A stretch of DNA of 64,000 nucleotides from Selaginella moellendorffii (taxonomy: Eukaryota; Plantae; Lycopodiophyta): NCBI RefSeq assembly GCF_000143415.4, contig NW_003314432.1, forward strand, positions 104,851 through 168,850, written 5' to 3'. The notes under the pieces are model-generated. The model ran no database searches and was not told the origin of the DNA. It saw only the letters and a list, made by a program, of their open reading frames with translations. Positions 21,600-62,764 of the stretch are shown piece by piece (positions within the stretch are counted from its first letter, which is position 1; each line of letters starts with the position of its first letter). The position numbers were made by a program, and so were the translations under genes.

Positions 21600-22045
21600 A
21601 ATCACTTAACTTCATTTACGAAAACATCATCACAAGATATGGCTTACCTTGAGAACTCATCACTGATCAAGGAACACACTTCATCAATGAAACAATCAAG
21701 ATTCTGGCTCAAGAATTCACTATCCAGCACAAGGCTTCAACACCATACTACCCTCAGGGCAACGGTCAAGCAGAGTCTACAAACAAGACACTCAAAAACA
21801 TCCTCATGAAAATCGTGAAAATAAATCAGAAAGACTGGGACGATTACATCTATAATGCTTTGTAAGCATATCGAACTGCATATAAAGTTTCAATAAATTC
21901 AACACCATTCAAACTCACCTACGGCCTTGAATCTTTGACACTACTTGAGTACATCGTTCCATCACTATAAATGGCAATATAATACAAAATCAACCAAAAA
22001 GAATCAATCAAAAGAAGACTAACCATGCTAGAACAACTTATTGCT
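21600..22045 (+). mobile_element. Ty3/gypsy integrase core fragment
   Basis: ENIITRYGLP*ELITDQGTHFIN...STPYYPQGNGQAESTNKTLKNIL...DWDDYI..AL*AYRTAYK..TPFKLTYG. Confidence 0.85.
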
Positions 22046-22189
22046 AGCTAAGATCCTTTGACTATCTCGTTTTGAAGCTTTGGAATGCTCAAGGAGTCTT
22101 TTCTAACTCAGCAAAGATGTTGCTTCATATGATGGCCAAGGCTAACTATTATCAAACAGTTCTTTTGATAGAGTTATGCAATCTCACAT

Positions 22190-24740
22190 GCAAGGCACTA
22201 CTTTGATGATGTCCTATGACTAAGGAGGAACATGAGATGCATGTGAGGCAAATGTTGCCACTATTGAGGGAGAACAAACTGTATTCTAAACTGTCAAAGC
22301 GTGACTTCTTCTTGGAGGAGATCACATATCTTGGACATGTGGTGCCATGAGATGGTGTGCGGGAAGATCCTCAAAAGACTCAGATAGTCATTGACTAGCT
22401 TGTTCCCCCTACTGTGCATGGGTTTCCTTGGTATGGTGGGAGTCTTTTGCCGGCTTGTGAAGAACTTCTCCTTGATTGCTGCTCCTTTGATGGATATTCT
22501 GCAAAACACCACCAAGCATGCTAAGTTGGTGTGGGGTGAAAGTGTCAAGAAGTGTTTGAGCAATTAAAGCAGTCATGTATATTCTACAGATATTTGCTTG
22601 TGATAAGCCACTTGTGGTAGAAGGCTAAGGCTCACACTATGGAGTCTATGCGTTCAGAGGGTATGGCTCATGAGTCCTTTTCTCTTTCTGATCCTAGTGA
22701 GCCCATGGGTGTCAGTGTGGACCAAGGAGAGAATGTATCTACTCGTGTTCTAGCTGACACTGCTGTCACTAAGCTTTCTGAAGGAGTGAAGAAGAATTGT
22801 ATCAACTCATCTGAGCTATACAGTTGTTTGTGCAATGAGTTGTGCATAGCCAAGTGCTCAGTGTCCTCTTTGACTCTGGTGCTACGCATACTTTCATTAA
22901 CAAGGCTAGTGATGAGGGTATAGGAGCTGTCTTGGTGCAAGACTGCTGTCCTATTGCCTACATAAGCTACAAGTTTGATGCAACTTAGCTGAATTGGCAA
23001 CTCGGGATAGGAAGTTGTATGTTGTAGTTGTTGCGGTCAAAGAATGGAGGCATTATCTGTATGGTTTGAATTTTTCATGTGGATAACTTTACCACTTGTC
23101 ACTCTTTCCACTCGCCAGATGGAGCTTTGAGGCCAGCTAGCTCATTCACTGGAGTTTTTGCAGGAAATGGATGTGCAGATTCCAAATCACCAGAGGGGTT
23201 TAAGGTGACGAAAACCGATTTCCCTAGGGATTCCGGAGTAAAAGTCAAAGGGTAATTTTGACCGTGAATTCGGAAGTTGCTAGGTTTTCCAAGATCTACA
23301 ACTTTTCTTTAAGACAATTTTCCTGTTTCTAAAAGGAGTAGACAGTAAAGGTTGTTGTTTCTCCATTGTCTAGGATGGTGAACTTTATCTCATTTGGGAA
23401 GCTCTCCAGTGGTTTGCTGGATGAAATTAAGGAACTTGCTGACTTCAACTCCTTTGTAGTGAAGGCACGTGCAGTTGTTTTGAAGGGGGATGCCTCTTCC
23501 AATACAATTGTGCTTCCTTCAATGTATGAGATGGTTTCCTAGTCAAGAGGAATCGGGCTATGGTTCCTAGAGATGATGTTCTTTTACAGTGGATTCTGTA
23601 AGAGTGTCTGTTGCACCAAGTGCAGGACATCAAGGACGTGTGTTCTGGTAGAGATGCATTTATTTTGGCTTGGAATGTTGATAAGTATGTGCACAATTGT
23701 TAGACTGGCCAGGCAGTCACAATGGATTGTCAGAAGCATGAAGGTCTCTACCATAGTTAACCTCAGTGGAAGTGGGATAGCATTTTCTATGAGTTTCATA
23801 GTAGGCACTTCAAGGCAATGATGCTATTTGGGTTGTTGTGGATTGTGTGATGATGTTGGCTCACTTCTTCCTTGTGAAGATGAATGCTAAGGCTTTTGAC
23901 CTTGCTCAGCTGTATTTCTCTATGGGCTGCATGAGGATGTTGTAAGTGATCGGGATCCCACGTTCACTTTGGTGTTTTGGCAGATGGTGTTCCAGAAGCT
24001 TGAGACAAAGCTGAGCATGAGCATCCACAGTCAGATGGACAAACAAAACGAGTTAATTAGGTGCTGGAAGACATGCTGAGATCATTTGTTGGTCATTTGA
24101 AGAGGCAAGGTATTTGGGAGAAGTACCTGCCTTTGTTAAAGATTGCCCATAACTGTGCCTTCCATTTGGCTATTGAGATAGCTTTGTTTATGGCAATGTA
24201 TGGCTTTCAACCTCAGTCCCCTGTTGGTATGAACTTGGCTTCTCTTAAGGTGCGCCAGGCAAAGGAGTTGGCTGATGAGCATCATCAGCACAAGCAGTTT
24301 CAGGTTGGAGACAAGGTTTTCCTTCGGTTGTCTGAAGCTCAGTGAGCTCTTCAAGGTGGAGGTAGTTCTAAGTTGTTGCCACAGTACTGTGGGCCTTGGA
24401 TTATTCTCAAACGAGCTGGAGACCTTGCCTATCAACTAGATTTGCCTAGTGGTGTGAACATTCATCCCGTCTTCTATGTAGGAAGTTGAAGGCATGTTTG
24501 CATTCTGGTAATATCTTGGACCAGTCTGCGATCAAGATTCCAGAGATAGATGTTTGAAGGTTGGCCCTACTTGTGTGTTATAGCAACAGCTAGTGCGCAC
24601 ACATCATAAAACTTGGAGAGAGTTACTCGTTCAGTGGAATGGTTATTCTCCATATGATGCTACATGGGAAGCTGAGGATGATGTTGCTTCCTAATTTTGA
24701 GTATGACTTGGATGACATTCCAGAGGAAGAGGAGAATTAG
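22190..24740 (+). mobile_element. Degenerate chromovirus-type Ty3/gypsy pol (RT end, RNase H, integrase, chromodomain)
   Basis: LRENKLYSKLSKRDFFLEEITYLGH; ELYVVVVAVKEWRHYLYG; VSDRDP.FT..FW; HPQSDGQTKRVN*VLEDMLR; YCGPW....GDLAYQLDLP..IHPVF; LVQWNGYSPYDATWEAE. Confidence 0.85.
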
Positions 24741-24854
24741 TCGTTTGCTCCTATCCTTTCTTTCTTTTCTGACCCTGTTGATGGCTGGAGGTGTTGTGTC
24801 ACATGAGACAGTTAGTGGTTTTGTTAGCGGGATGCTTTGCTAGCTTCTCTCTCC

Positions 24855-26430
24855 TCAGCTACTGTTCATCATAGTTGGAGCAGAGGGGAAAATGTCACCA
24901 TATTTCGTGATGAACCAGCTGATTCTGGACCTAGGTCTCTGATCAAAGAGCCAAATACCAACTGCAAATTTGCATGTGAAGAGGTGTTCAAGCATCTCCA
25001 CGGGGTTTTCATTGCATAGAATACACAGAGTTTTGTGAACTGTGAGCCAATCACCAATAGGGATGCTGTCCTGCACAAGAAGCCAGCTTACCTTAGCTTC
25101 CACCAGTGTCTTCCACATGTTCACAATGTACTTCTGATTCTTCAACTTTCGCATAAGCTTGGTGTCAATTTTATCCATCAAAAGCTCTCTGCCATGCTTA
25201 GACCTGTACATAAAAAAAGACACACTGAACTCATTACCTTCCCAGGATAACTGAGGCGGATTCTATATAGGATCAGATATAGGTACTCCCCAAACTAGTG
25301 TATTGCAGAGCATTCTCCCAGTTGAACCTTAGGATCCAGTTCAGTGTATTTCCCTCTCTGATGATCCTTTTACCGAAGGCCATCCTGGGAACTGGGACCT
25401 CCTCGGGAACTATACATGGAAACAGTGCACCACTGTTATGGGGATAAAAAACAATACCTTGAGGTGATGCGGTTGTTTCCATAACATGAGTCTCAGCACC
25501 ATCAAGCATTATCCAATCACGAACCTATGATAACTTCAGTTTGTAAAGCAAGATGAAGGCGATCACAAGCGATGCTGCCTTAAGCTTTGATGTGGAGTTT
25601 TCATCCTGGGTTGTAATGGGTTGTCATGAGGCCATCCGATGAGCAGGGTTTGCTCCAAGCGGACGTTAAACAAATACCTGACTTTACCTTTTTCATTGTA
25701 TCATACCTTGTCCACTGCTGAGGAAGAAAAACAAGATCCCAACAAGAACTTTGCTGTAAGTGATGGCTTGCTAGCTCTTTGTAGATCCAATAAGTTTTTG
25801 ATCGAAGCTCCCACATTTCTATGCCACCTAGGCCAAAAACCTCTACCCAAGCCTGGAGCTGAACAGTCACCTATATACTGTTGATTACTGTTCTTATGCA
25901 CTACGTTGAAGAACAAGCAATCAGCTAATGCCTCTGTCAGATGGTCTGGTTCTTTCTGACTTAACCTGGGTAGGAGTGTGACTTCCATATCTTCAACATC
26001 TCTTTTGCTATTCCATCCTGGACTTTCTTTGTGTTGAGAGGAGCAATGCCAATCGATTCCTTGTTTCTAGTTACCACTCTGTTTAGGCAAGATCTTCTGC
26101 AGCTAAGCTCTGAAGAGGAGGTGCCAGCTCTGGTTTCGTGGATATAAACCTGACACAAGCACTTTGAAGAGAAGAGCTTTGGATTGAATTCCTGGGTGTG
26201 GCACATTCTGAATAACTGAATTCCACTCTACTTTTGCCCAGACTTTGCACCTGCTGGAGTTTCTAAAGTTTCTACATATGTTGTTGGTGATCAAGTGTTG
26301 GTGAGTTATCGGGTGTTGCGGATCCAAGGTTTTTGCTGCGTAGGTCCTTATCACATCGTCCAACAAGTTGGTCCACAAATCTATGTGGTGACACTCAATG
26401 CACAACGTCAAGAGAAGATCCATGTGAAGC
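24855..26430 (-). mobile_element. Non-LTR (LINE) ORF2 C-terminal remnant with zf-RVT-like motif
   Basis: KVSWLLVQDSIPIGDWL...CILCNENPVEMLEHLFTCKFAVGIW matches the CxxC...E...HLF.C..A..IW zinc-binding motif. The upstream extent is uncertain. Confidence 0.55.
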
Positions 26431-28666
26431 GGTTAGCTCGATATTGTGTGTGAACGGATTGATGTAAGGATTCTACCATATATTCTATGATAGATATAGA
26501 TAAACTCAACAAGATTGGAATACACTAACTTTTTAATAATAATAAATAAAAATTTTTTAATGTGTATTTATGGAGCCCACAAGAGTAGGAGTGAGGTGTT
26601 ATTAAATTATGAATCCCACATTATTTATATGCTCATATGATCCTGAGGTTTAGGGATATGAGGGAGTAAGTTTTATGTAGAGGGAGGAAAAATAAGAATT
26701 AATTAGAGTGAAAATACGAGTTATTGTGAAATTAGAGTATAATGTGAGTTAAGAGTTAACACGAGCTAAGAGTAAAAACGTGATGTAGCAGCTTAAAAGA
26801 GGGAAGTAGGAATGCTCAGATGGAGTTCCACCAGGTAGAAAAGACAAGTCATACCTCAAGCCTCGGATTGCTCTCACCCGGTTGCCTACTTTAACCAAGC
26901 CCCGAACCACCCAGCAGTCTTGGCGCACAAGGATGACATCAGCCCTAACCTCTTGCTCCACTGCTCCTACTTCTGAGCTGCTAGCAGCTTCTCCCCTCCT
27001 TAAAAAAAAAGGTCTGTTGTTCTCTTGGAGTTCAAGAGGCATCCTCTTCACCGTCTCCTCTGTTTTTGCTAGCTAGTTAGCTCTTACAAGAAGGAGCACA
27101 AGCCAAGTTCAGCTCCATGCTCAGCTCTATCATCTCCTCTTTAAGACACCTCACCTCTTTGAAGCCATTCAGGAGAGCTAGCACGCTTCACGTCTAGACG
27201 TCCCCCCCTTTTTTCCTTTTTGCGATTGTCTCTTCAAACTCATCATACTTATTTAACTCACCAAACCTTACCAAGCCGAGTGCAGGTTTTGAAACCCCAT
27301 GAGTCACCTTGGCCTTTTTCCATCTTCCAGTTGAGCTCTCCAACAATCTTGACATGCGGATACGTGCAAACTGCTCCTTGAGCCAGGACCATTTCTCCAG
27401 GAGATAACTTATGCTACAACACTCTCCGCTCGACGATCTCAATGTGGAAAGATCCACAAAGCTGTCCCACTCATCATAGTTGTAGAAGAAATCATCCTCA
27501 TACTGCATCTGCAACCTTGCTCGAGCCCGAGCCTCCGCCATCGCAAGCTTCTCCCTCATCTTGATCAGCTCACACGAGGCGGCAAAACAAGTCCAGGTCC
27601 TGAGGAACAACAATGGAATACACCTTTCCCAGGTACCTGTCTCGAAACCTGTGAAAGTACAGTGGACGATGTGGTGTTTCAGATCGCAGTGGAATGATAA
27701 CTTGATGAAAGCAACAAAACCATCGAGCTCGCTCTTTGGGGATCAATTATCATCTCCTCCTTTGAAGCAATGAGCAGCAGGCCTTGATCGCATCCAGAAG
27801 TACTAGAGATAGTCTGCAAAAGCAAGTTTGACACCAGTTATTTTGGCAACACAGAAGAAAAGGAAGAAAAATAAACTCAAGTTTCAAAATTTATGGAGAT
27901 CCATACAATCCAAATCAAGATCAATCCTCCACGAACTTAATGCCGCTTTCAGCACCTCCAAGCTCTGCCGAAAAACGTAGCCACAGTATGCCACAATCGT
28001 TCGCTTGAAAATCTGAAGATGTCAATCGAAGCATGCAAGCAAAAACATGAAGTAAAGAAGTGCAGGTGGACAACAAAGGAGATGAACTGAGCGAGGCCAA
28101 GAACACATATAAGGACTGAATGTAAGCACGTGAGGCCACGTGTGGTTTTTTCCTCCGTGCGTGGCTTCATGTGCGAAGAGTTTGGTGTGGTAAGGTATGT
28201 TGCAGAGCAGCCAGAAGCCCTGGGTGAATATAAGTACGTGAGGCCTTGTGAGGTTTTACCACCGCCCGAGGACTCCTGTGCATGGGCCCCGGGCGAGAGT
28301 CATTTGTGAAAGTGTTCTGCATGAAACTGGTGCCCTGAGGCTTCTGGCCACGTGGCCCCATGATTAATTTGTGTAGAGTGTGGTTTATTTTTGCATATTG
28401 AGTGTATCGATATCTTTTAGTTAGCAGATTATATTGAAGAACTGAAGACGATATTGAACTGAAGATTCTTCAGCTCTTGAGCAACTGATTGCTGCTGGCT
28501 CACTTTCTATATATATCAAAGAGATTTTTTTTTAACAATAAACATCTAAGCTGCTGCAGTTAAGCTGTGACATTGTAAAGTTTAAAAAGGAAAAGAATTA
28601 GAAAAAGAAAAAAACAGAAATCACGAGCATTTTACTACTGCAATAACAAATCGGGATTTCTAGGGT

Positions 28667-31600
28667 ATGTGTGCGGCGCTAGGGTTTGTGTGGTGTGTGT
28701 CATTTCTCAACAATCTCATGGAGTGGAAAACGTTTTTCAGGGATCCCACTTTCTGGTGGGACAACAGGTTCAAGAAGAAAAACAAGTTCTTCTCAGAGTC
28801 CTACCCGGATTTCAAACATGTTTCTACCGGAGAGAGCCTCTGGATCGCCAACAGGAAAACACCGACCTGGGTCTCTGCAAAACTCGAGGCGCTCGCTGAC
28901 CCAGCTGTAGGTAAGGCCACCACGGCCCGCTACAAATCTCCACATACCCCACCTGTAGCTGGTGATGAACCGGTGAGTTTAGGGAGGCTGATACACCGCG
29001 TGAGAGACTCAGCTGAGAGCAGATCCCTTTCTTTGGGAAAACAAGCCCATGAAGCTGTGCTCAAGAGTGATGAGCACAAAAGCAACATCTACTTGTTGAC
29101 GGGATTGATCGATATGTACTGCAAGTGTGGCGAGCTTAAGGAGGCTCGCAAGATTTTCGACTCCATGGGAACCCGGAGTGTTGCGTCCTACAACGCGATC
29201 ATCCAGGGCTGCGGCTCGAACGGGCAAGCTGAACTTGCTCTGGAGTACTACTCTGCCCTGAGAGCTTGTACCACCATTCAACCCAACGATCGGACACATG
29301 TTGCGGTGATCAGCGCCTGCTCCAGACTTGCTACCGAATCCAGCGAGAAGAGGGAGAGAGCTCTACGCATCGGGATGGAGATCCATTCAATGCTGAGCAA
29401 GGAGAAGAAACAGCTAGATCTGTTCGTGGCGACTTGCCTGGTAGACATGTACTGCAAGTGTGGCGAGCTTGAGGAGGCTCGCAAGATTTTCCACTCCATG
29501 GGAACTCGGAGTGTTGTGTCCTACACCGCGATCATCCAGGGCTGCAACACGAACGGGCGAGCTGAACTTGCTCTGGAGTACTACTCTGCCTTGAGAGCTT
29601 GTACCACCATTCAACCCAACAATCGGACTCATGTCGCGGTGATCAGCACCTGCTCCACACTTGCTACCGAATCCAGCGAGAAGAGGGAGAGAGCTCTACG
29701 CATCGGGATGGAGATCCATTCAATGCTGAGCAAGGAGAAGAAACAGCTAGATCTGTTCGTGGCGACTTGCCTGGTAGACATGTACTGCAAGTGTGGCGAG
29801 CTTGAGGAGGCTCGCAAGATTTTCCACTCCATGGGAACTCGGAGTGTTGTGTCCTACAACGCGATCATCCAGGGCTGCGGCTCGAACGGGCAAGCTGAAC
29901 TTGCTCTGGAGTACTACTCTGCCCTGAGAGCTTGTACCACCATTCAACCCAACGATCGGACACATGTCGCGGTGATCAGCGCCTGCTCCAGACTTGCTAC
30001 CGAATCCAGCGAGAAGAGGGAGAGAGCTCTACGCATCGGGATGGAGATCCATTCAATGCTGAGCAAGGAGAAGAAACAGCTAGATCTGTTCGTGGCGACT
30101 TGCCTGGTAGACATGTACTGCAAGTGTGGCGAGCTTGAGGAGGCTCGCAAGATTTTCCACTCCATGGGAACTCGGAGTGTTGTGTCCTACAACGCGATTA
30201 TCCAGGGCTGCGGCTCGAACGGGCAAGCTGAACTTGCTCTGGAGTACTACTCTGCCCTGAGAGCTTGTACCACCATTCAACCCAACGATCGGACACATGT
30301 TGCGGTGATCAGCGCCTGCTCCAGACTTGCTACCGAATCCAGCGAGAAGAGGGAGAGAGCTCTACGCATCGGGATGGAGATCCATTCAATGCTGAGCAAG
30401 GAGAAGAAACAGCTAGATCTGTTCGTGGCGACTTGCCTGGTAGACATGTACTGCAAGTGTGGCGAGCTTGAGGAGGCTCGCAAGATTTTCCACTCCATGG
30501 GAACTCGGAGTGTTGTGTCCTACACCGCGATCATCCAGGGCTGCAACACGAACGGGCGAGCTGAACTTGCTCTGGAGTACTACTCTGCCTTGAGAGCTTG
30601 TACCACCATTCAACCCAACAATCGGACTCATGTCGCGGTGATCAGCACCTGCTCCACACTTGCTACCGAATCCAGCGAGAAGAGGGAGAGAGCTCTACGC
30701 ATCGGGATGGAGATCCATTCAATGCTGAGCAAGGAGAAGAAACAGCTAGATCTGTTCGTGGCGACTTGCCTGGTAGACATGTACTGCAAGTGTGGCGAGC
30801 TTGAGGAGGCTCGCAAGATTTTCCACTCCATGGGAACTCGGAGTGTTGTGTCCTACAACGCGATCATCCAGGGCTGCGGCTCGAACGGGCAAGCTGAACT
30901 TGCTCTGGAGTACTACTCTGCCCTGAGAGCTTGTACCACCATTCAACCCAACGATCGGACACATGTCGCGGTGATCAGCGCCTGCTCCAGACTTGCTACC
31001 GAATCCAGCGAGAAGAGGGAGAGAGCTCTACGCATCGGGATGGAGATCCATTCAATGCTGAGCAAGGAGAAGAAACAGCTAGATCTGTTCGTGGCGACTT
31101 GCCTGGTAGACATGTACTGCAAGTGTGGCGAGCTTGAGGAGGCTCGCAAGATTTTCCACTCCATGGGAACTCGGAGTGTTGTGTCCTACAACGCGATTAT
31201 CCAGGGCTGCGGCTCGAACGGGCAAGCTGAACTTGCTCTTGAGTACTACTCTGCCCTGAGAGCTGATAACACCATTCAACCCGACGATTGGACACATGTC
31301 ACGGTGATCAGCGCCTGCTCCACACTTGCTACCGAATCCAGCGGGAAGAGGGAGAGAGCTCTACGCATCGGGATGGAGATCCATTCAATGCTGAGCAAGG
31401 AGAAGAAACAGCTAGATCTGTTCGTGGCGAATTGCCTGGTAGACATGTACTGCAAGTGTGGCGAGCTTGAGGAGGCTTGCAAGATTTTCCACTCCATGGG
31501 AACTCGGAGTGTTGTGTCCTACACCGCGATCATCCAGGGCTGCAACACGAACGGGCGAGCTGAGCTTGCTCTGGAGTACTACTCTGCCCTGAGAGCTGAT

Positions 31601-33088
31601 AACACCATTCAACCCGACGATCGGATTCATGTCGTGGCGATCAGCGCCTGCTCCACACTTGCTACCGAATCCAGTGAGAAGAGGGAGAGAGCTCTACGCA
31701 TTGGGATGGAGATCCATTCAATGCTGAGCAAGGAGAAGAAACAGCTAGATCTGTTCGTGGCGAATTGCCTGGTAGACATGTACTGCAAGTGTGGCGAGCT
31801 TGAGGAGGCTCGCAAGATTTTCCACTCCATGGGAACTCGGAGTGTTGTGTCCTACACCGCGATCATCCAGGGCTGCAACACGAACGGGCGAGCTGAACTT
31901 GCTCTGGAGTACTACTCTGCCCTGAGAGCTGATAACACCATTCAAGCTGATGCTTGCACCTACACCTGCGTCCTTGTTGCTTGCGGGAGTGTGATGGCGA
32001 TCAAGCTCGGGAGGGAGATTCACCAGCTGGCGAAGCATAAAGGGCTGCTGAAAAACAATCCAGTTCTGGGCTCCAGCCTGGTGAGCTTCTACGGCAAATG
32101 CGGCGATGTTGATTCTGCTCAGGAAGCGTTTGACGAGTGCCGAGCTCGGGACGACACGGGTCTCTGGAACTCGCTCATACAGGCTTACACTCTCCAGGGC
32201 CGATCGATCGAGGCCTTGGAGCGTTTCTATTCCATGACTCAGGAGGAGGGCTGTAAAGCTGACGATGTGAGTTTTGTCTCGGTGTTGAACGCTTGCAGCC
32301 ATGGTGGTCTGGTCGGGAAAGGAAGGCAGCTTCTGGATGAAATGCCCAAGCAGTATGGAGTCAAGCCACGTCTGGAGCATTATGTGTGCCTGATCGATAT
32401 GCTCGGGCGAGCTAACCTCCTCGACGAAGCTGTGAGAGTTCTCAGAGCCATGCCTTTTGAACCGGATGCAGTGGTTTGGACGTCCCTGCTCGGAGCCTGC
32501 CGGAAGTGGAAGAATTACACGATCGGCAAACTCGCGTTTGAGCGTCTTGTGGAGATGGATCCCAAGAGCGACACGCCCTACGCATTGATGGCCAATATAT
32601 TTGGAAACCTGGGGATGCTCAGTGAAAGGGCTACTGTTGTGGAGAGAATGAGAGGTGAAGGCAGCTTCAGGGAGCCCGGGAGAAGCTGGTGGACGGATGT
32701 TAGCTCAGGAAAAGTGCATTCTTTTTCTGTCGGGGATAGGAGTCACTCACAGAGCGACGAGATTGCGGCGAAGCTCAAGCAATTGTTGCTGAGAATGAAA
32801 GAGGAGGGGTACGCGAGTGATGTGATCAACGTTCTAAAAGACATACCCGAGGAAGAGAAAGAGGATCACCTGTGCGGCCACAGTGAGAAGCTTGCGCTGG
32901 GGTGTGCTCTGGTGAACTCGCACCAGAAGGAGACCATCAGAATTGTGAAAAATCTCCGAGTTTGTGACGATTGCCATGCGGCCACTGCTCTCATCTCTAA
33001 GCTGGAAAAAAGGCTAATCATCTGCAAAGATGCCAGTCGGGTTCATGTGTTCCAGGATGGCAGATGTTCCTGTGACAACTACTTTTGA
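28667..33088 (+). CDS. PLS-class PPR-E-DYW putative organellar C-to-U RNA editing factor (DYW of PGxSWWTD type) with N-terminal OSB-like PDF motif, 1473 aa
   Basis: Intact intronless ORF (alternative ATG at 28718). WWDNR..K..PDFKH..TGESLW at 28724-28894; S-P-L array 29087-31951; P2-L2-S2, E1/E2; DYW from PGRSWWTD (32675) with HSEKLA, CDDCH and HVF..G.CSC; ends NYF. Confidence 0.93.
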   Translation: MCAALGFVWCVSFLNNLMEWKTFFRDPTFWWDNRFKKKNKFFSESYPDFKHVSTGESLWIANRKTPTWVSAKLEALADPAVGKATTARYKSPHTPPVAGDEPVSLGRLIHRVRDSAESRSLSLGKQAHEAVLKSDEHKSNIYLLTGLIDMYCKCGELKEARKIFDSMGTRSVASYNAIIQGCGSNGQAELALEYYSALRACTTIQPNDRTHVAVISACSRLATESSEKRERALRIGMEIHSMLSKEKKQLDLFVATCLVDMYCKCGELEEARKIFHSMGTRSVVSYTAIIQGCNTNGRAELALEYYSALRACTTIQPNNRTHVAVISTCSTLATESSEKRERALRIGMEIHSMLSKEKKQLDLFVATCLVDMYCKCGELEEARKIFHSMGTRSVVSYNAIIQGCGSNGQAELALEYYSALRACTTIQPNDRTHVAVISACSRLATESSEKRERALRIGMEIHSMLSKEKKQLDLFVATCLVDMYCKCGELEEARKIFHSMGTRSVVSYNAIIQGCGSNGQAELALEYYSALRACTTIQPNDRTHVAVISACSRLATESSEKRERALRIGMEIHSMLSKEKKQLDLFVATCLVDMYCKCGELEEARKIFHSMGTRSVVSYTAIIQGCNTNGRAELALEYYSALRACTTIQPNNRTHVAVISTCSTLATESSEKRERALRIGMEIHSMLSKEKKQLDLFVATCLVDMYCKCGELEEARKIFHSMGTRSVVSYNAIIQGCGSNGQAELALEYYSALRACTTIQPNDRTHVAVISACSRLATESSEKRERALRIGMEIHSMLSKEKKQLDLFVATCLVDMYCKCGELEEARKIFHSMGTRSVVSYNAIIQGCGSNGQAELALEYYSALRADNTIQPDDWTHVTVISACSTLATESSGKRERALRIGMEIHSMLSKEKKQLDLFVANCLVDMYCKCGELEEACKIFHSMGTRSVVSYTAIIQGCNTNGRAELALEYYSALRADNTIQPDDRIHVVAISACSTLATESSEKRERALRIGMEIHSMLSKEKKQLDLFVANCLVDMYCKCGELEEARKIFHSMGTRSVVSYTAIIQGCNTNGRAELALEYYSALRADNTIQADACTYTCVLVACGSVMAIKLGREIHQLAKHKGLLKNNPVLGSSLVSFYGKCGDVDSAQEAFDECRARDDTGLWNSLIQAYTLQGRSIEALERFYSMTQEEGCKADDVSFVSVLNACSHGGLVGKGRQLLDEMPKQYGVKPRLEHYVCLIDMLGRANLLDEAVRVLRAMPFEPDAVVWTSLLGACRKWKNYTIGKLAFERLVEMDPKSDTPYALMANIFGNLGMLSERATVVERMRGEGSFREPGRSWWTDVSSGKVHSFSVGDRSHSQSDEIAAKLKQLLLRMKEEGYASDVINVLKDIPEEEKEDHLCGHSEKLALGCALVNSHQKETIRIVKNLRVCDDCHAATALISKLEKRLIICKDASRVHVFQDGRCSCDNYF
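29087..31951 (+). repeat. Coding tandem array of 333-bp (111-aa) S-P-L PPR triplets: 8 full units plus a ninth S-P
   Basis: DMYCKCG occurs 9 times at exact 333-bp spacing (unit starts 29087, 29420 ... 31751), with near-identical DNA. Confidence 0.97.
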
Positions 33089-35087
33089 AAACATGTCAGT
33101 GCTCTTTCTTGCAGTTATCCCTGGTTTTAAACCCTCCGTGAGTCAAGCAGAAACATGGGCCGCTGAGTGAGCATGCCTTGTCAAAGTACTGCTGTCAACC
33201 TGAACTTCACGGAGAAAAAATTAACATTTAAAAGTTAAAACTATGCAAAAGGAGTCTTAAATTTAAATTTCTTTTTGGTAGCAGAATCGGGGAATGCTGA
33301 CTAAACCTGCCAACAGGTGCCCCAAAACGGAGTGCCCTAGTATGAAGACTTGCCAGTACCCAACTTTGGGTTTGTGCTCCTAGAGCACGTTGAAGACGTG
33401 TGGAAGCTGGTGACGACAGCATTTGTTTCTTGTGACGTACTCAACAGTTCCTTGGCGACGTCTTCCTTCCAGATTTTTTGAGCTTGTCGTGAGTGGTGAC
33501 CTGCTTGCTCTCTCTGTGACAACTTCTTCCAGCCTCTGGTGCCCAACCTCAAGGCTCTCTTGTGGATGGAGCTAGCCCTACACAGTGTGTGTGTGTATCA
33601 ACCAGCAGACACACAAATCATTGAGAATTAGCAACAAGTGTGTATCATAGGCTTAGTACGTAGTGTACTAGTGTTCATGTACATGTGTTTCAGTTAAATA
33701 TAATGGGCCAAATACACCGAAGAAGTGTGTATAAGAAGAGTAGAAACAAATTAAGAAATTTAAATTAAGAAGTGAAAATGAAAATAAAAATTGTCCATCC
33801 TCATCAGTTTGCTGAAATTAAGTTGGATTCAATTCTTCCAGCTCCAAATATTGTGTGATTGAGTTGTAAGTTAATAGTAGAAAATAAGAAAAAAAACAAA
33901 CATTGAAAAAATAGTGTTTGATAATATCTTCTTTGCTTTTAGTTTTTTATTTTCAAAAGAAAGTTAGTGGGGGAGTAAGATATCTTTGCCGTTCATTGGT
34001 GGTTAATTAAATGAGCATGTTTAGAGATGTTTATAAGAGTTTAGCTCTGGACCAAGAGTACCCGAAAATTAAAGTTCAAAATTTACGTTTTCCCTATTTG
34101 CACAATAACTTAAGCTAAAGTAATGTACTTACCCTTATTTTTTATGGGGATTCGCAAGAAAAAAAAAGGCAAATTTAGAGGATTCTTAAGTAATTTTCAA
34201 AAACCCCGACCAAATCGGTCATCATCCTTCTATATTTAAAAGAGCAAGGGTGACATATTCAATCGAAATTCTTTACGAGCTTAATGGTGGAGATGAAGAC
34301 ATGTGGGAAAAAACAGTTGAGGGTGGAACGTTTTTCTTTTAGGGTAAACCAGCTTTTTTAATGCATTTTTCCAGGAGCGCTTATGTATTTATGTTATGGC
34401 TGTTCATATATGAGGGTTTCATGTTTGACTCTCTCTCGTATCACTGTGCAGCATTGGGAACAAAACAAAGAGAGTGAGCTCCTTGATTCTTCCAAGTTTC
34501 GTTCTCACATTTTTCACAGTTGAATCGCCACTGTTTCTGAGTCTCCAGAATGTATACTTTGGAACGGGTATGTGTATGATTTATGGTCTTTGCAATGTCG
34601 TTTGAATGTGTTTGCATAAGAACAGGTCATGAGTACTGGGAAGATGAAGGCATTGAAGAAAAAAAGCCAGCATGCAGGCAAATGATGAACATATTTCACC
34701 CATATGATCCTCTCACCTATAGGTATCAATATACTTCTGTGTGACCAGTGTTTACATTTATCCTTTCATCCTGATTACAGAGTGGAACCTCTAATATCTA
34801 TTCTTTTTGGAGAAAGTCAATGAATATCTTGGGATACAGGTAATCATAGTTCTTTGTAAGTTTTGTTGTCAAAGCTAGAGGAAATTCTTTGGTTGGGGTA
34901 TGGTTTTGTCACAGTTTTTTATGGTAGTATGGTGACAGAAAGGCTATCTAGAAGTCCTAATGGTAGAGTCGACTTAATGCTACAGGTAAGTCTTGCTCTT
35001 TGCTATCACGTCATTCTCATGTGGATCCAGGATACAAAATTTGAGCACCACTACATATTGGTATCTGATAAATGACAGTAGTGGCTG

Positions 35088-37445: not shown

Positions 37446-39992
37446 TTTTATTTTAAGGGAAGTTGTTAAAAATTATTCCGGAAATATTCGAGAAGATTCT
37501 TAAGTTAGGGTTTGGCGTGCCTGCGAAGAAGATCTGATCTCGCGGCCCGGCCCGAGAATTAAAACATGGCAGCAGCCGCGGAGATTTATGAGGAGAACCT
37601 GAGGAGGTGGAGGAAGCAGGTTTAGGGTTGGAAGAGGAGGAAGTCGCCATAAACAGCAACAGGAGGAAGAGGTGCCCATGGAGGGAGGTGGCCATGGAGT
37701 GGTAGGAGGGAGCGGGGTGGCCGGGGTTGGCCGCGGATCTCTGAATCTGGCCCCGGGAGGATTAGGCCATGGTTCTGAGGCGGCTCGAGGAGGGGGTGCC
37801 CCGGGAGGAGGAGGCCATGGTTCTACCCTAGGCGGTTCTTCTTCGGGAGGAGGAGGCCATGTATCATCGCCAGGAGGAGGCCAAGCCTCGGTGGGAGGAG
37901 CCGAAGCCACAGCGGGAGGAGTCCAAGCCGCACCCGGAGGAGCCCAAGCCACGTCTGGAGGAGTTCCCCTGGAGCACAGCGTGCCGGGAGTTCCAACTGC
38001 TTTGAGAACCAGAGATGGCAGTGAGTTTACATTTCTTAGGTTGCATGCATGCATGAGTGATTGAGAGCTCCCGGCAGGGTCATGAAGAAGAGGGAGATGA
38101 CAGCGTCCCCGATCTGGAACAAGACCCGGATGGATGCTCACATGGAGGAGCTCGACCACGAGGCTGTCCAGTTTGTGGATACCTCGGGTTTTGCTGCACC
38201 TGCTGCTGCGAAGAGAACCCGGGGAAAGAACTGGAACCATGCTGAGACCATGCTCCTGATTGATCTCGCTCGGGGAAAAACATCTCGCGAAGATTGCGGG
38301 GGAGGGAGGAGCAGCCAGCATGTTCTCATGACGAAGACACAGCGCTGGAATCTCATCTTTCACCCTTTTGCTTTAGGGTTTAAATGCACATTGCGGATGA
38401 CAAGAGCCCCGCTGCCAGAGGAAGAAGACCGTGAACTTGAGGTTCGTCGGGCTGTGATTGGGAGGAGGTTTTGCATCGGCCTGTGGTGGGTGAAGCCTCG
38501 AAATGTCGCCACCTAGAGTAAGTTTTCTTTGGAGTATTACGATGTGGGGGGAAACTTCAGATGGAGAAGAGGACCTTCTTCACCATTTGTGGCATGCTGG
38601 AGAGCGAGATCCGGAAGCAAGATACCGGTTGGAGGAGTGTGGTGCCGGTGGATGTTCGACTGGGGGTGACTTTGTACAAGTTTTTCAAGAACACAGATTA
38701 CTTGGATCTGGCGGACAAGTTCGGCATCGGGGAGTCCACAGCTCATGAAATTGTCATGGACACTACTGTGGCGATTGTCAAGTGTCTCAGGTACAAGATT
38801 CATTTTCCTTCAACCGCCAAGGAGGTTCGAGCTGTTACTGCTGGCTTTCGACAAGTGACAGGTACATTTTCTTATGTTTTTTGGATTGTTATAAGTTTTG
38901 ATGACCAATAGGAACCTGACTGCCTAATGTTGCTGGGGCGATCGACTACTAGACTGGACGGCGAGAGCTACTACGACCGGAGGCAGCGGTACTCAGTCAT
39001 CTTGCGTTTGTGATGCCCAGAAGAGGTTCCTCAGTATCTACGCTGGGTGGCCAGGTATGTTTCTTTGTGTGTTGTGGATGGTTCTAAAATGTTCTTTTTG
39101 CTTTCAGGACGCGTCCACGACATGAGGGTTTTTCGTAATTCAACCCTCGGGAACAAGATTGTAGCAAGGGAGCTGCTGACATCGCTCACGGTGTTAGTAT
39201 ATGGTGATAGGATCAAGCCATACCTAGTGGGGGACAAAGGGTACCAACTCCAGCAGCATCTGATGATTCCACACACAAGTAAGTCTTCTTCATTCTACTT
39301 TCTTTTGTTCACTTGTTTTGGTTGTTGCTCAGCTCCGAACCCGACACCATCCAAGGCAGCTTTCAACCTTCATCACCACCTTGCTCGGATTGTTATTGAG
39401 CAAGCATTTGGACTTCTTAAAATGAAGTTCAGATGCTTGGATCAAAAACAAAGGATCCAGCCAAAGTACTTTCCTAACATCATCAAGAGTTGTTGCATCT
39501 TGCACAATTTCTTGATTGATGTTGGGGAGACTGATCTTCGGGCGGAGATCCAAGCTTGGAGGAAAGAGGTGAAAAGGCTCAAGGACCAGGACCTCTTTGT
39601 TGATTACAGTGATCCCGAGCAAGCGGAAGGGGAACCTTGTGAGGAGTTGCACAGTCCAGAGGATGCAAAAGAGGTTAGAGAGAACCTCACGTTTTCCCTC
39701 TGTCTTTGCCAGTGGCGTTCGTGTTTGCTTTGAAATTTGCCAGGATATAATTCTAAACATTTGAATTTGAATTTGAAATTTCAAAATTTGAATTAAGTGA
39801 ATTTTAAGTGTTCGAGTGCATTGTTTTTAAGTGCGAATCCGAGGGTGTTTTTCCACTTAAATCTAAGACATGTGCGAATGCAAAAGTCCTTATAAGTTTA
39901 CTTTGCAACACAAATTTTTTCAATGTACTTTCTTAATTTTTAAAGTGGGTCGCTTAAGTTTTTTTTCACTAAATAAATGTGCGAATTGGTCC
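37446..39992 (+). mobile_element. PIF/Harbinger transposon, copy 2 (defective; its 5' subterminal part probably lies at about 34092-34221, split off by the Helitron)
   Basis: Gly-rich plus Myb/SANT-like ORF1 remnant (about 37566-38330) and transposase (about 38400-39733) with YLVGDKGY, IEQAFGLLK and CCILHNF; frameshifts present. Confidence 0.88.
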
Positions 39993-41399
39993 TTTCTCAA
40001 CATAAAAGATAATGTTTTGCCAAGCTTACCACAACCACTGGCAACCTTGATTGCCAATGATGTTGCTGTGGTATCTATAACCACACAGCTAGGGCCAAAG
40101 TTACACCACCAATGGCCCATAGCAAGCACAGCCATGGTGGCACAAGGTCTCGGCCATGGCTAGCACTACCTTGGCTGGCCTTAGCCGTGGCATAGCCATC
40201 TACTAGAGGAGCTAGAGGAGAGCTGTTGTAGGAGGAGTGCTAGAGGAGTTGGAGGAGAGCTGTTGCAGGAGAAGTGCTGGAGGAGCTGGAGAGCTGCTAT
40301 AGGAGGAGTGCTGGAGGAGACTCAATGCACAAGGGGTTTTGGAGGAGCTAGAGGGTGAGAAAAAATGATTTGATGAAATTAAAAGAAATTGAAAAATCCA
40401 AGAGTAGGATTGGCAAAAGTACAATGTGGAAGAGAGTTGTTGCAGGAGGAGCACGAAAGGACATGGACAGGAAGAGTGTTGGAGGGAGGAGATATGTTGC
40501 ATTGGAGGAAAGTAAGAGCCACTAGAGGAGTTGGGCACTAGAGGAAAATAAGAGTTGCCAGGTGGAGAGTTGGGCATTATACACAATACCATCTACACTA
40601 ACTAACCCTAACCGAACTCAAATAGATATAATTTTCTGCATTGCACTATGCAACAACGTTTGGTTTGCTTTGATATTGTCAATTTTTACATAAATAAAAA
40701 ATTTATATGATGTACTCATTTTAATACAATTTTTTATTCATATGTACTTCTTGTTTATCTCTCAAAGAGTTCAACTAATGTTTTTTTTATCAATTTTATT
40801 CTTCCTATAGCAATCTTAAAGCAAATAGTGAAGAATATAAGAAAGAAGTCCTACACTCTTGCAATACTAAAATCTTGCAAACTTTCCTTTAAGAACATTA
40901 TTACTAGTCAAAAAGTTCACTTTTTTTGAGTAGTCTGATGTGTTTGTCTTTATAGCATGTCCATAAACAGAAAACAAGGAACTCCTCATAGTAGAGTATC
41001 ACAGTGATAGAAGAAGTTTGAGCTTCTTCTCCATGCAATGGGCAACAATATAATCAAGTGGCTGTAGTGATTGATACAACAGTTCTCCTGGATCTTGCTT
41101 GTCAGGCTGGCGTGGCTAAGACACTGATAAAGGTAAGTTCTGCAAAGATTTAATAAGGTTTTGCTGGATTGTCCTTACTGGGTTTACAGTTAGATCATGG
41201 GTGATCAGGAGCTCACAGTTTTGCATAAGATTTGATGAAACATGTTTCTTGCTTGAGCTAGGATCCTTGATCTGCCATGGGTGGTGATCAATGCATTCAC
41301 AAAAGGTGCCGGAATGAAATCCAACAGCTTAAGCACTTTCAAAAGACACCCATTCTAGGCATTTGCAGTGACCATTGCATTCCAAGAGACCAAGGTCCT

Positions 41400-50169: not shown

Positions 50170-50550
50170 AAAAAGGGCAACTGCATTTGAGGTGAAAGGG
50201 CTACTAATTGCCGGAAAGCAGAAAGAGGCTTTACGGGCTGCTCAAGACGGGCAACTTTGGGTATGTGCTCTTCTTATGGCCCGGCAGCTGGGAGAGAAGG
50301 TACCTTGTCTTGTAGCTTTGATGTATAGACCGTTAGTGATTGGTCTTGTGGTTTTTAATAGTTCTACACCGACACTATAGCGGAGATGGCTCAAAGTCAG
50401 TTTCAACCAGGGTTTCCCCTCCGGACTCTAACTCTTCTTTATGCTGGTCAACATGCCGGAGTGTTCATAGGGAACACTAATTCGTCGAACGTAACAGCGC
50501 TTCAACCTCAACCGGTTCCAGCGTCTCTGGAGACATTGAGATGAGGTATA
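50170..50550 (+). pseudogene. SEC16: SEC16 fragment (paralog of 14385-14915)
   Basis: ATAFEVKGLLIAGKQKEALRAAQDGQLWVCALLMARQLGEK; GFPLRTLTLLYAGQHAGVF; truncated at the Harbinger junction. Confidence 0.75.
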
Positions 50551-52963
50551 AGTGGAAAAACACCCTCGGATTCGCACTTAAAAACAATGCATTCAAACAC
50601 TTAAAATTCACTTAATTCAAATTTTGAAATTTCAAATTCAAATTCAAATGTTTAGAATTATATCCCGGCAAATTTCAAAGCAAACACGAACGCCACTGGC
50701 AAAGACAGAGGGAAAACGTGAGGTTCTCTCTAACCTCTTTTGCATCCTCTGGACTGTGCAACTCCTCACGAGGCTCCCCTTCCGCTTGCTCGGGATCACC
50801 GTAATCGACAAAGAGGTCCTGGTCCTTGAGCCTTTTCACCTCTTTCCTCCAAGCTTGGATCTCCACCCGAAGATCAGTCTCCCCAACATCAATCAAGAAA
50901 TTGTGCAAGATGCAACAACTCTTGATGATGTTGGGAAGGTACTTTGGCTGGATCCTTTGTTTTTGATCCAAGCATCTGAACTTCATTTTAAGAAGTCCAA
51001 ATGCTTGCTCAATAACAATCCAAGCAAGGTGGTGATGAAGGTTGAAAGCTGCCTTGGATGGTGTCGGGTTCAGAGCTGAGCAACAACCAAAACAAGTGAA
51101 CAAAAGAAAGTAGAATGAAGAAGACTTACTTGTGTGTGGAATCATCAGATGCTGCTGGAGTTGGTACCCTTTGTCCCCCACTAGGTATGGCTTGATCCTA
51201 TCATCATATGCTAACACTGCGGGCAACGTCAGCAGCTCCCTTGCTACAATCGTGTTTCTGAGGGTTGAATTACGAAAAACCCTCATGTCATGGATGCATC
51301 CTGAAAGCAAAATGAACATTTTAGAACCATCCTGGCCACCCAGCGTAGACACTGAGGAACCTCTTCTGGGCATCACAAACCCCTTGCAAGATGACCGAGT
51401 ACCACTGCTTCCGGTCATAGTAGCTCTCGCCGTCCAGTCTAGTAGTCGATCGCCCCAGCAACATTAGGCAGTCGGGTTCCTATTGCTCATCAAAACTTAT
51501 AACAATCCAAAAAACATAAGAAAATGTTCGTGAGATGTGGACTCCCCGATGCCGAACTTGTCCACCAGATCCAAGTAATCTGTGTTCTTGAAAAGCTTGT
51601 ACAAAGTCACCCCCAGTCGAACATCCACTGGCACCACACTCCACCAACCGGTATCTTGCTTCCAGATCTCACTCTCCAGCATGCCACAAATGGTGAAGAA
51701 GGTCCTCTTCTCCATCTGAAGTTTCCTCTTCCACCTCCCCACATCGTAATACTCCAAAGAAAACTTACTCCAGGTGGTGACATTTCGAGGCTTCACCCAC
51801 CACAGGCCGATGCAAAACCTCCTCCCAATCACGGCCCGACGAACCTCAAGTTCACGGTCTTCTTCCTGAGGCAGCATCCGCAATGTGCATTTAAACCCTA
51901 AAGCAAAAGGGTGAAAGATGAGATTCCAGCGCTGTCGTCATGAGAACATGCTGGCTGCTCCTCCCTCCCCCGCAATCTTCGCGAGATGTTTTTCCCGAAC
52001 GAGATCAATCAGGACCATGGTCTCAGCATGGTTCGAGTTCTTTCCCCGGGTTCTCTTCGCAGCAGCAGGTGCAGCAAAACCCGAGGTATCCACAAACTGG
52101 ACAGCCTCGTGGTCGAGCTCCTCCACGTGAGCATCCGGGTCTTGTTCCAGATCGGGGACGCTGTCATCTCCCTCTTCTTCATGACCCTGCCGGGAGCTCT
52201 CAATCACTCATGCATGCATGCAACCTAAGAAATGTAAAACTCACCGCCATCTCTGGTTCTCAAAGCAGTTGGAGCTCCTGGCACGCTGTGCTCCAGGGGA
52301 ACTCCTCGAGACGTGGCTTCCTCCTGGCGATGATCCATGGCCTCCTCCCGGAGAAGAACCGCGGCGTCCTCCTCCTAGAGTAGAACCATGGCCTCCTCCT
52401 CCCGGGGCACCCCCTCCTCGAGCCGCCTCAGAACCATGGCCTAATCCTCCCGGGGCCAGATTCAGAGATCCGCGGCCAACCCCGGCCACCCCGCGCCCTC
52501 CTCCCACTCCATGGCCACCTCTCCCTCCATGGGCACCTCTTCCTCCTCCTGTTGGTGAAGATAGAGCACGAGCAGGCCCAGATCCAGCTCGATCGGCCCC
52601 ATTTCCCAGAGCTCTGTTTCCTCTTCCAACCCTAAAATCGGATTACCTGCTTCCTCCACCTCCTCAGGCCTCTCCTCATAAATCTCCGCGGCTGCTGCCA
52701 TGTTTTAATTCTCGGGCCGTGCCGCGAGATCAGATCTTCTTTACAGGCACGCCAAAGCCTTACCTAAGAATCTTCTCGAATATTTCCGGAATAATTTTTA
52801 ACAACTTCCCTTAAAATAAAATGACCCCAACACTTTAGATTTGGTCGGGGGTTTTGAAAATTACTTAAGAATCCTCTAAATTCGCCTCTTTTTTTTTGAA
52901 ATACTAATAATTTTCCCATAAAAAATAAGGGTAAGTACATTACTTTAGATTGTGCAAATAGGG
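50549..52963 (-). mobile_element. PIF/Harbinger transposon, copy 3 (defective, 3' end truncated)
   Basis: ORFs 50675-51418, 51497-51883 and 51938-52207 are near-identical to copy 1 on the opposite strand; internal deletion at about 51525. The 5' end is tentative. Confidence 0.85.
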
Positions 52964-53981
52964 AAAACGTAAATTTAAACTTTAATTTTCGGGTAACTCT
53001 TGGTCCAGAGCTAAACTCTTATAAACATCTCTAAACATGCTCATTTAATTAACCACCAATGAACGGCAAAGATATCTTTACCAGCACTCCCCCACTAATT
53101 TTCTTTCAAAATAAAAAACTAAAAGCAAAGAAGATATTATCAAACACTATTTTTTCAATGTTTGTTTTTTTTTTCTTATTTTCTACTATTAATTAAGTTA
53201 CAACTCAATCACACAATATTTGGAGCTGGAAGAATTGAATCCAACTTAATTTCAGCAAACTGATGAGGATGGACAATTTTTATTTTCATTTCTTTTGCAC
53301 TTCTTAATTTACATTTCTTAATTTGTTTCTACTCTTCTTATACACACTTCTTCGGTGTATTTGGCCCATTATATTTAGCTGAAACACATGTACATGAACA
53401 CTAGTACACTACGCACTGAGCCTATGATACACACTTGTGATTTGTGCATCTGCTGGTTGATACACACACACACACACGTGTAGGGCTAGCTCCATCCACA
53501 AGAGAGCCTTGAGGTTGGGCACCAGAGGCTGGAAGAAGTCGTCACAGGAGAGAGCAAGCAGGTCACCACTCACGACAAGCTCAAAAAATCTGGAAGGAAG
53601 ACGTCGCCAAGGAACTGGTGAGTACGTCGCAAGAAACAAATGCTGTCGTCACCAGCTTCCACACGTCTTCAACGTGCTCTAGGAGCACAAACCCAAAGTT
53701 GGGTACTGGCAAGTCTTCATACTAAGGCTTATTATCTGAATCTGGGCACTCCGTTTTGGGGCACCTGTTGGCAGGTTTAGTCAGCATTCCCCGATTCTGC
53801 TACCAAAAAGAAATTTACATTTAAGACTCCTTTTGCATAGTTTTAACTTTTAAATGTTAATTTTTTCTCCGTGAAGTTCAGGTTGACGGCGGTACTTTGA
53901 CGAGGCATGCTCACTCAGCGGCCCATGTTTCTGCTTGACTCACGGAGGGTTTAAAACCAGGGAAAGAGCACTGACATGTTT

Positions 53982-56696: not shown

Positions 56697-58236
56697 ATAT
56701 ATAATTGGCTACTTGGCCTTCGACATAAGCTGCCAGATCCTTGTTCGGGATGTTCACCTGGAGTCATCTCGCGTCTCCATGAGATTGTTGAGAAATGACA
56801 CACACACCACACAAACCCTAGCGCCGCACGCATACCCTAGAAATCCCGATTTGTTATTACTTAACTGTAGTAGTAAAAAGCTCGTGTTTTCTGTTTTTTC
56901 TTTTTCCACTTCTTTTCCTTTTTAAACTTTACAATGTCACAGCTTAACTGCAGCAGCTTAGATGTTTATTGTTAAAAAAAAATCTCTTTGATATATATAG
57001 AAAGTGAGCCAGCAGCAATCAGTTGCTCAAGAGCTGAAGAATCAGTACATGCATAATTTTCAGACAATCTTCTAACTGGCTGAACATCAGGTTTTTATGA
57101 TTATTATTATTATTACTAACAACACGCACGAACTTCCTAGAAATCCCGATTTGTTATTCTCTGCATTCATTTTTTATATGATCTGTTGCTCCATGCACTT
57201 AACTGTAGGTAGTCTACAGTTCTTCAATATAATCTGCTAACTAAAAGATATCGATACACTCAATATGCAAAAATAAACCACACTCTACACAAATTAAATA
57301 AAAAATGCTCTTCATGGGGCGACGCGGCCAGAAGCCTCAGGGCACCAGTTTCATGCAGAACACTTTTGCAAATGACTCTCGCCCGGGGCCCATGCACAGG
57401 AGTCCTTGGGCAGTGGTAAAACCTCACAAGGCCTCACGTACTTATATTCACCCTGGGCTTCTGGCTGCTCCGCAACATACCTTACCACATGAAGCCACGC
57501 ACGGAGGAAAAAACCGCACAAGGCCTCACGTGCTTACATTCAGTCCTTATATGTGTTCTTGGCCTCGCTCAGTTCATCTCCTTTGTTGTCCACCTGCGCT
57601 TCTTTACTTCATGTTTTTGCTTGCATGCTTCGATTGACATCTTCAGATTTTCAAGTGAACAATTGTGGCATACCGTGGCTACGTTTTTCGACAGAGCTTG
57701 GAGGTGCTGAAAGCGGCATTAAGTTCGTGGATTGATCTTGATTTGGATTGTATGGATCTCTATAAATTTTGAAAATTGAGTTTATTTTTCTTCTTTTTTC
57801 CAAAATAACTGGTGTCAAACTTGCTTTTGCAGACTATCTCTGACCTTTTTTCTTAAGGGGGGGAGAAAAGAGGTTAGGGCTGATGTCATCCCTGTGAGCC
57901 AAGACAGCTGGGTGGTTTGGGGCTTGGTTAAAGTGGGGGTTGGGAGCAATTCAAGGCTTGAGGTATGACTTGTCTTTTCTACCTGGTGGAACTCCATCTG
58001 AGCATTCCTACTTCCCTCTTTTAAGCTGCTACATCACGTCTTAGCTCGTGTTAACTCTTAACTCACATTTATACTCTAATTTCACAATAACTCGCATTTT
58101 CACTATAATTAATTCTTTTTTTTCCTTCCTCTAACTTACCTGGGCCCCCCTCATATCCCTAAACCTCAGGATCATATGGAGCATATAAATAATGTGATTA
58201 ACACCTCTCACTCTTGATCTTGTGGGATAACACCTC

Positions 58237-58262
58237 ACCCTAAACCCTAAACCCTAAACCCT
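58237..58262. repeat. Short interstitial plant telomeric repeat (CCCTAAA)3
   Basis: ACCCTAAACCCTAAACCCTAAACCCT. Confidence 0.8.
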
Positions 58263-58419
58263 CTTGTGGGCTCCATAAATACACATTAAAAATTGTTAAT
58301 TTATTATTATTAAAAAGTTAGTGTATTCCAATCTTGTTGAGTTTATCTATATCTACCATAGAATATATGGTAGAATCCTTACATCAATCCGTTCACACAC
58401 AATATCGAGCTAACCGTTT

Positions 58420-60009: not shown

Positions 60010-60129
60010 GGAGAGAGAAGCTAGCAAAGCATCCCGCTAACAAAACCACTAACTGTCTCACGTGAGACAACACCTCCAGCCATCAACAGGGTCAGAAAAG
60101 AAAGAAAGGATAGGAGCAAGCGACTACTG

Positions 60130-62615: not shown

Positions 62616-62764
62616 TGCACATGAGATTGCATAACTCTATCAAAAGAACTGTTTGATAATAGTTAGCCTCAGCCATCATATGAAGCAACATCTTTGCTGA
62701 GTTAGAAAAGACTTCTTGAGCATTCCAAAGCTTCAAAACAAGATAGTCAAAGGATCTCAACTAG

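Follow-up and report, generated by a model that had tools for sequence, protein, structure and literature searches.

Recombining P-L-S cassettes and changing predicted RNA specificity in a probable editing-factor gene subfamily of Selaginella moellendorffii

The window, a stretch of 64,000 nucleotides of Selaginella moellendorffii (contig NW_003314432.1, positions 104,851 to 168,850), contains two paralogous genes for pentatricopeptide repeat (PPR) proteins, here called gene A and gene B. Gene A is an open reading frame (ORF) of 1473 amino acids (aa), most of which is taken up by a tandem array of a near-identical 333-bp cassette. The features of the two genes are as follows.

28667-33088, plus strand: gene A, an intact intronless ORF of 1473 aa with nine anchors (ORF list and translation)
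28718-28912, plus strand: N-terminal region of gene A with a P-D-F signature (translation)
29087-31951, plus strand: tandem array of the 333-bp cassette, with nine S/P anchors, that is, eight full units and a terminal half unit
29201-31239, plus strand: perfect higher-order repeat in gene A, 29201-30240 being identical to 30200-31239 (1040 bp, offset 999; offset scan)
31952-33088, plus strand: unique C-terminal part of gene A with canonical L-S, P2-L2-S2, E1, E2 and DYW (DYW at about 32807-33082; Pfam)
53982-56696, minus strand: gene B, 904 aa, with four anchors, that is, three full cassettes (3.5 units), and the same ends as gene A
about 55125-56291, minus strand: array of gene B, a weaker copy of the unit of gene A

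Gene A was classified as a PLS-class PPR-E1-E2-DYW protein. Its parts follow in the order of an N-terminal PDF-like region, L-S, eight P-L-S cassettes, a final P-L-S, P2-L2-S2, E1, E2 and the DYW deaminase. The PPR families of Pfam were matched with an E-value of 1e-117, and E_motif (PF20431), Eplus_motif (PF20430) and DYW_deaminase (PF14432, residues 1381-1472) were all above the cut-offs. The HxE and CxxCH zinc and catalytic motifs of the deaminase are present in the translation as HSE and CDDCH; the last three residues of the protein are NYF, not DYW. The closest proteins were PPR proteins of S. moellendorffii, with 78-98% identity over the C-terminal part. A search of the window against Rfam gave no match.

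The array was analyzed with Tandem Repeats Finder, which reported a period of 333 over 29114-31945, with 8.5 copies, 96% matches, no indels and a score of 5209. The motif register was taken from an alignment with 9kfx_A, a synthetic PPR-DYW protein of solved structure (E 5.8e-73), and it places the first residue of the first S motif at 29087. The anchors are spaced every 111 aa, and each cassette consists of an S motif of 31 aa, a P motif of 36 aa and an unusually long L motif of 44 aa with a nine-residue insertion. The full units are 90.7-100% identical in nucleotides (median 94.9%), and there is no stop codon in any cassette. An AlphaFold2 model of three units (pLDDT 87.6, pTM 0.78) showed six helices per unit, with helix B of the L motif extended to 22 residues, and its best structural matches were 9kfx_A and the designer PLS protein 5iww_D. 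The P-L-S order of the tandem motifs was thus found by Pfam, by the residue-level alignment to 9kfx_A and as three helical hairpins per unit in the model. In gene A, the residue pairs at positions 5 and last of the P motifs are, in order, NN, TN, NN, NN, TN, NN, ND, TD and TD, and those of the S motifs are TS seven times and then NS twice. The near-identical 333-bp units, the exact P and S strings, the linked blocks GSNGQ/NTNGR and CTT/DNT and a second paralog in the window had all been put forward in an original prediction made from the letters of the window, and each of them was recovered here.

Five more paralogs were taken from the S. moellendorffii assembly GCA_000143415.2 (L001-L004), which we did not treat as a source independent of the window. 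The family therefore has at least seven members, with 4, 5, 6, 7, 7, 9 and 9 anchors. The five reference loci are as follows.

L001: L1, seven anchors, open frame
L002: L2, five anchors, open frame
L003: L3, seven anchors, open frame
L004, 4214-8686, minus strand: L4m, nine anchors, 1491 aa
L004, 10732-13794, plus strand: L4p, six anchors, with a frameshift before the DYW domain

Open frames were found in six of the seven members, and those of the intact copies span 904-1491 aa. L4p lies head-to-head with L4m and loses its frame just before the PG box and the DYW domain, so that it is likely to be either a pseudogene or the product of a sequencing error. The flanks between all loci are 90-96% identical, and no pair among the five reference loci exceeds 97%. 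The loci are therefore paralogs within segmental duplications of about 10-12 kb, and an allelic (haplotype) relation among them was ruled out.

The number of units changes by whole steps of 333 bp across the seven paralogs. In gene A, a duplication of three cassettes (999 bp) takes the array from six to nine anchors, and the units A2 and A5, as well as A3 and A6, are identical in nucleotides. L4m carries a perfect repeat of 1156 bp at the same offset of 999, which is built of different cassettes than that of gene A. Both perfect duplications comprise exactly three cassettes, or nine PPR motifs. Within the 333 bp of the unit, all four gametes were found at 261 of the 595 pairs formed by 35 informative sites, which corresponds to at least 10 exchanges (Rm). 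The first units and some later ones have positional orthologues, being closest to the unit at the same position in other paralogs, and the arrays therefore predate the gene duplications; A2-A6 are copies made within the gene. The arrays continue to gain, lose and exchange cassettes. Since the cassettes are near-identical (91-100% in DNA), they misalign and recombine, and there is good support for unequal crossing-over together with gene conversion between these P-L-S cassettes as the mechanism of change.

The same mechanism accounts for the changes of the code residues. The original prediction had spoken of unequal crossover or gene conversion among cassettes, which agrees with the whole-unit changes, the perfect 999-bp duplications and the mosaicism described above, and also of recurrent substitutions, which did not hold: each block has two old alleles, and these have been redistributed among the units. 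Recurrent independent mutation was accordingly rejected as the source of the code changes, since the two-allele blocks are redistributed by recombination. Among the 47 P motifs of the family, all four canonical codes occur at similar frequency (NN 11, TN 11, ND 9 and TD 16). In the 11 units of the window, 30 of the 111 positions are variable, including four of the six positions 5 and last (hypergeometric P 0.045). With 34 distinct units, 49 of the 111 positions show any variation and all six code positions are among them (P 0.006), and four of the six are found among the 19 common polymorphisms (P 0.008). The enrichment that the original prediction had expected at positions 5 and last was thus obtained, nominally, with P values of 0.006-0.02 for the distinct units. 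When position 2 was added, all nine positions were variable (P 0.0004), in a test that was picked after the data had been seen.

The arrays were read with the PPR code as tested by Yan et al. (PMC6468296), in which A is read by TS and TN, G by TD, U by ND, C or U by NN and C by NS, while VD is weak. The predicted reading of gene A is roughly 5'-A(YnA)(AnA)(YnA)(YnA)(AnA)(YnA)(UnC)(GnC)G-3', upstream of the fixed C-terminal motifs, and that of gene B is A(YnA)(GnA)(AnA)G.

The best explanation overall, and in our judgment the probable one, is that these genes form a subfamily of editing factors with recombining cassettes and changing predicted specificity. Gene A would be a member of a young subfamily among the genes for organelle-type C-to-U RNA-editing factors, and in this subfamily unequal crossing-over would add or remove whole cassettes, at times three together, and gene conversion would shift short blocks between cassettes. 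Two of the putatively converted blocks carry the specificity residues of the P motif (N/T at position 5 and N/D at the last position), and a further site is position 5 of the S motif (T/N). Their re-assortment would give each paralog its own array length and its own string of the four canonical codes, and so a different predicted RNA. The proteins presumably edit RNA, and the code changes would then alter target choice and supply diversity that may benefit a lineage whose editing sites number in the thousands.

Several observations weigh against this explanation. Most variation lies outside the code, with 43 of the 49 variable positions not being code positions. Position 5 of the P motif is tied to P12 and P13, and usually to P16, while the last position (P36) is tied to P30 and P31; neither varies alone, so the code changes could be hitch-hikers in conversion tracts. 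Counted by events, the ratio of non-synonymous to synonymous changes (N:S) was 52:29 in the units versus 18:20 in the C-terminal part (Fisher P 0.11), and it was 21:6 for common versus 46:28 for rare polymorphisms (P 0.16), neither difference being significant. The predicted targets are of low complexity with a period of 3 nt, which is unusual for a specific editing site. By eye, the translated N terminus of gene A has no clear organelle presequence, and the array length of gene A is that of the assembly. Moreover, the hint of expression described below rests on sequencing runs whose RNA status is guessed.

Near-neutral drift of the distal motifs is a serious rival to adaptive reprogramming. 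The genes would then be working editing factors whose targets are chosen by the unique C-terminal motifs (final P-L-S, P2-L2-S2, E1 and E2), and the distal cassettes would contribute no more than length or a general affinity for RNA, so that slippage and unequal crossing-over would let their number, order and codes drift at little functional cost. We consider this possible, but clearly less likely than the recombining subfamily with changing predicted specificity. The Nei-Gojobori omega was 0.80 in the units versus 0.24 in the C-terminal part (five paralogs, 380 codons), which is under purifying selection, and the N:S of 21:6 for common polymorphisms is about the neutral site ratio. Furthermore, no test for positive selection was significant, copy number ranges from 4 to 9 without loss of frame, and the 18 control proteins described below, when pooled, gave 30 observed against 24.8 expected for the code positions (P 0.13), which is not a significant enrichment. 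On the other side, constraint is seen in helix B of the S motif (omega 0.26) and the cassettes contain no stops, and therefore the fold is maintained. The code positions are nominally enriched among the variable sites (P 0.006-0.045), and the two P-motif blocks, in a motif with an omega of 1.22, differ by nine non-synonymous and no synonymous changes. Positive selection is thus not demonstrated, and adaptive "reprogramming" is plausible but unproven. For the claim of a reprogrammable array in the original prediction, this means that the re-assortment and the presence of all four canonical P codes on one scaffold are retained, whereas positive selection is not carried by the tests (P 0.11 and 0.16). 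The family shows how such genes change quickly.

A stronger form of the explanation would have the cassettes kept as a system under selection, in which one P-L-S scaffold with four P codes and two S codes is re-assorted in steps of 333 and 999 bp and tracks fast-changing organelle RNAs. This form appears improbable to us. Each cassette would read three nucleotides, with clear codes in only two of its three motifs, and the arrays may therefore suit RNA with a 3-nt period. Candidates may be codon-phased sequence or the length-variable trinucleotide microsatellites of the mitochondrial DNA of S. moellendorffii, in which 57 such loci have been described, among them runs of ACC and of AGC within introns (PMC5654404). 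If the microsatellite reading were true, cassette number would track repeat number.

It is very unlikely that the nine-anchor array is an assembly artefact, in which a true gene of six anchors was over-assembled and the 999-bp repeat is a mis-join of near-identical cassettes or haplotypes. The 1040-bp repeat without any mismatch would fit such an error, there is no public gene record with exactly the product of gene A, and the independence of the window and GCA_000143415.2 is not established. In addition, Logan contigs from 24 runs (at least 97% identity) were short inside the array of gene A and came mostly from paralogs, leaving 29712-30695 almost uncovered, and they therefore cannot settle array length or transcription. 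But the repeat is exactly in frame and free of gaps, and no runs of N touch gene A or gene B, the nearest lying 11 kb off. Mis-joined haplotypes are expected to differ by about a percent and to adjoin gaps. Moreover, a perfect repeat of three cassettes is also present in L4m, where it is made up of other cassettes, and arrays of 4-7 diverged cassettes exist independently of the repeated segment.

Least likely of all is a decaying family, in which recent duplicates are passengers of segmental duplications rich in transposable elements and become pseudogenes, the array variation being debris of relaxed constraint: the position of the genes within segmental duplications of 10-12 kb, next to ORFs for Harbinger-type transposases and a remnant of zf-RVT, the frameshift before the DYW domain of the plus-strand paralog of L004 and the unit omega near 1 would agree with it, but six of the seven copies keep open frames of 904-1491 aa, the C-terminal omega is 0.24, the HSE and CDDCH motifs are intact and family-matching contigs occur in transcriptome-like runs, the last being weak evidence.

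The duplications that carry the two genes were located by self-BLAST of the window.

21739-34216, plus strand: left arm of an inverted segmental duplication of about 12.5 kb with 90-95% identity, carrying gene A
52838-63062, minus strand: right arm of the same duplication, carrying gene B

Genes A and B face each other within this inverted duplication, and more copies of its parts were found at 1-2346, 37946-40319 and 50549-52324. Three ORFs with a PIF/Harbinger-type DDE_Tnp_4 transposase domain lie at 1038-1781, 39047-39733 and 50675-51418 (E 1e-16 to 1e-19). There is also a hint of HTH_Tnp_4 at 326-976, and the zf-RVT remnant is located at 24855-25223 inside the duplicated block. A perfect run of 3.7 copies of the plant telomere unit ACCCTAA is present at 58237-58262, within the right arm.

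The N termini of gene A, gene B, L2, L3 and L4m share the signature W-W-D-N-R ... P-D-F-K-H ... L-W-I. The PDF motif of the plant OSB proteins is a 50-aa motif that binds single-stranded DNA (PMC6963530), and the N terminus of gene A resembles it, which may serve as a lead. The N terminus had no match in Pfam or Atlas.

Expression was approached through the same contigs. In three runs that resemble transcriptomes, coverage extends over the ORF and leaves out the 160 bp upstream of it, their RNA status being a guess. The exact 5' flank of gene B (56695-56724), which was first met as a 30-nt loose end, was found in contigs of the runs X2 and X15. Taken together, this weakly suggests expression of the family.

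The public models P0001, P0002, P0003 and P0005 of this family have only 497-617 aa, whereas in GCA_000143415.2 the DNA at these loci can be read through for 1030-1491 aa. The models are short because the cassette arrays were spliced out as false introns, and PPR censuses built on them therefore under-count motifs and miss the architecture. Exact-product look-ups for gene A and gene B matched no public gene record. A word search of a collection of 5.8 billion sequences returned no protein of 810-2578 aa with more than 40% identity to the array, and in an exhaustive search with one cassette the single representative above 42% identity was a 223-aa fragment model of the same family. Within public data, members of the subfamily were seen only in S. 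moellendorffii.

For comparison, 372 PLS proteins were screened for windows of 100 aa that recur within the same protein with an identity of 80% or more, at a distance of about 101, 202 or 303 aa. This filter for near-identical triplets was passed by 18 proteins (about 5%), with Sphagnum, fern and Balamuthia proteins among them, and it seems that triplet duplication is a general, recurrent mode in PLS proteins. The set includes P0243, P0342, P0080, P0093, P0009, P0016 and 12 others, with two proteins of Sphagnum fallax and two DYW proteins of Balamuthia among its members. P0243 contains eleven units of 97 aa that differ at a single residue.

For the gain of new site-specific factors by plants that edit thousands of sites, published accounts stress whole-gene duplication and retroposition (PMC13386178), and our literature searches returned no description of near-identical PLS triplets in editing factors. 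The family described here shows a second route, which runs within genes and is still under way: through the duplication, loss and recombination of entire P-L-S cassettes, the predicted specificity changes by three to nine nucleotides at once.

The closest known system, also in its mechanism, is that of the Restorer-of-fertility-like (RFL) P-class PPR genes of angiosperms. These genes lie in duplicated clusters, in which unequal crossing-over, gene conversion and indels of whole motifs produce chimeric genes, and their positions 5 and 35 are unusually variable, which alters the predicted RNA (PMC5075784). The literature on the RFL clade records indels of motifs, gene conversion and variability at code positions (PMC5075784; PMC2848758). 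RFL proteins are defined by P-class motifs only, single motifs of 35 aa that are far from mutually identical, without an editing domain, whereas gene A has PLS motifs and a DYW deaminase. The family of gene A further differs from them in its P-L-S triplet unit, in its predicted role as DYW editing factors, in its occurrence in a lycophyte and in the 91-100% identity of its units, and diversifying selection on it is not demonstrated.

TAL effectors consist of near-identical 34-aa repeats, each of which reads one nucleotide through two residues, and the number and order of the repeats vary among paralogs by recombination. The label "TALE-like" in the original prediction is apt to this extent, since the family of gene A also has tandem near-identical repeats whose number and order are re-assorted among paralogs through recombination. 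It does not extend to the pattern of variation: among TALE repeats, nearly all differences fall on the two residues that set specificity, while in the cassette family the great majority of the variable positions (43/49) lie elsewhere. Unlike TALEs, the cassette family has a recombining unit of three motifs, a presumed RNA ligand and recognisable codes only in the P and S motifs.

According to the block-duplication model (Rivals et al. 2006, cited in PMC2848758), PLS (PCMP) arrays grow when blocks of motifs are duplicated internally; the model was drawn from old and diverged Arabidopsis motifs. In the cassette family the duplicates are still 91-100% identical and their number differs among paralogs, and the family shows this block duplication of PLS arrays while it is under way. 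The cassettes also resemble the designer and synthetic PLS and S-type editing factors (9kfx, 5iww; PMC8809517) in having a constant scaffold with changed code residues, and these factors match the cassette best in both sequence and fold. Those proteins are man-made and use canonical motifs of 35, 36 and 31 aa, whereas in the natural cassette nine inserted residues extend the L motif to 44 aa and make its helix B longer. Selaginella has no MORF cofactors (PMC8809517). The family also provides a PLS scaffold of natural origin that is independent of MORF and already accommodates all four canonical codes, which is of practical interest when editing factors are to be designed.

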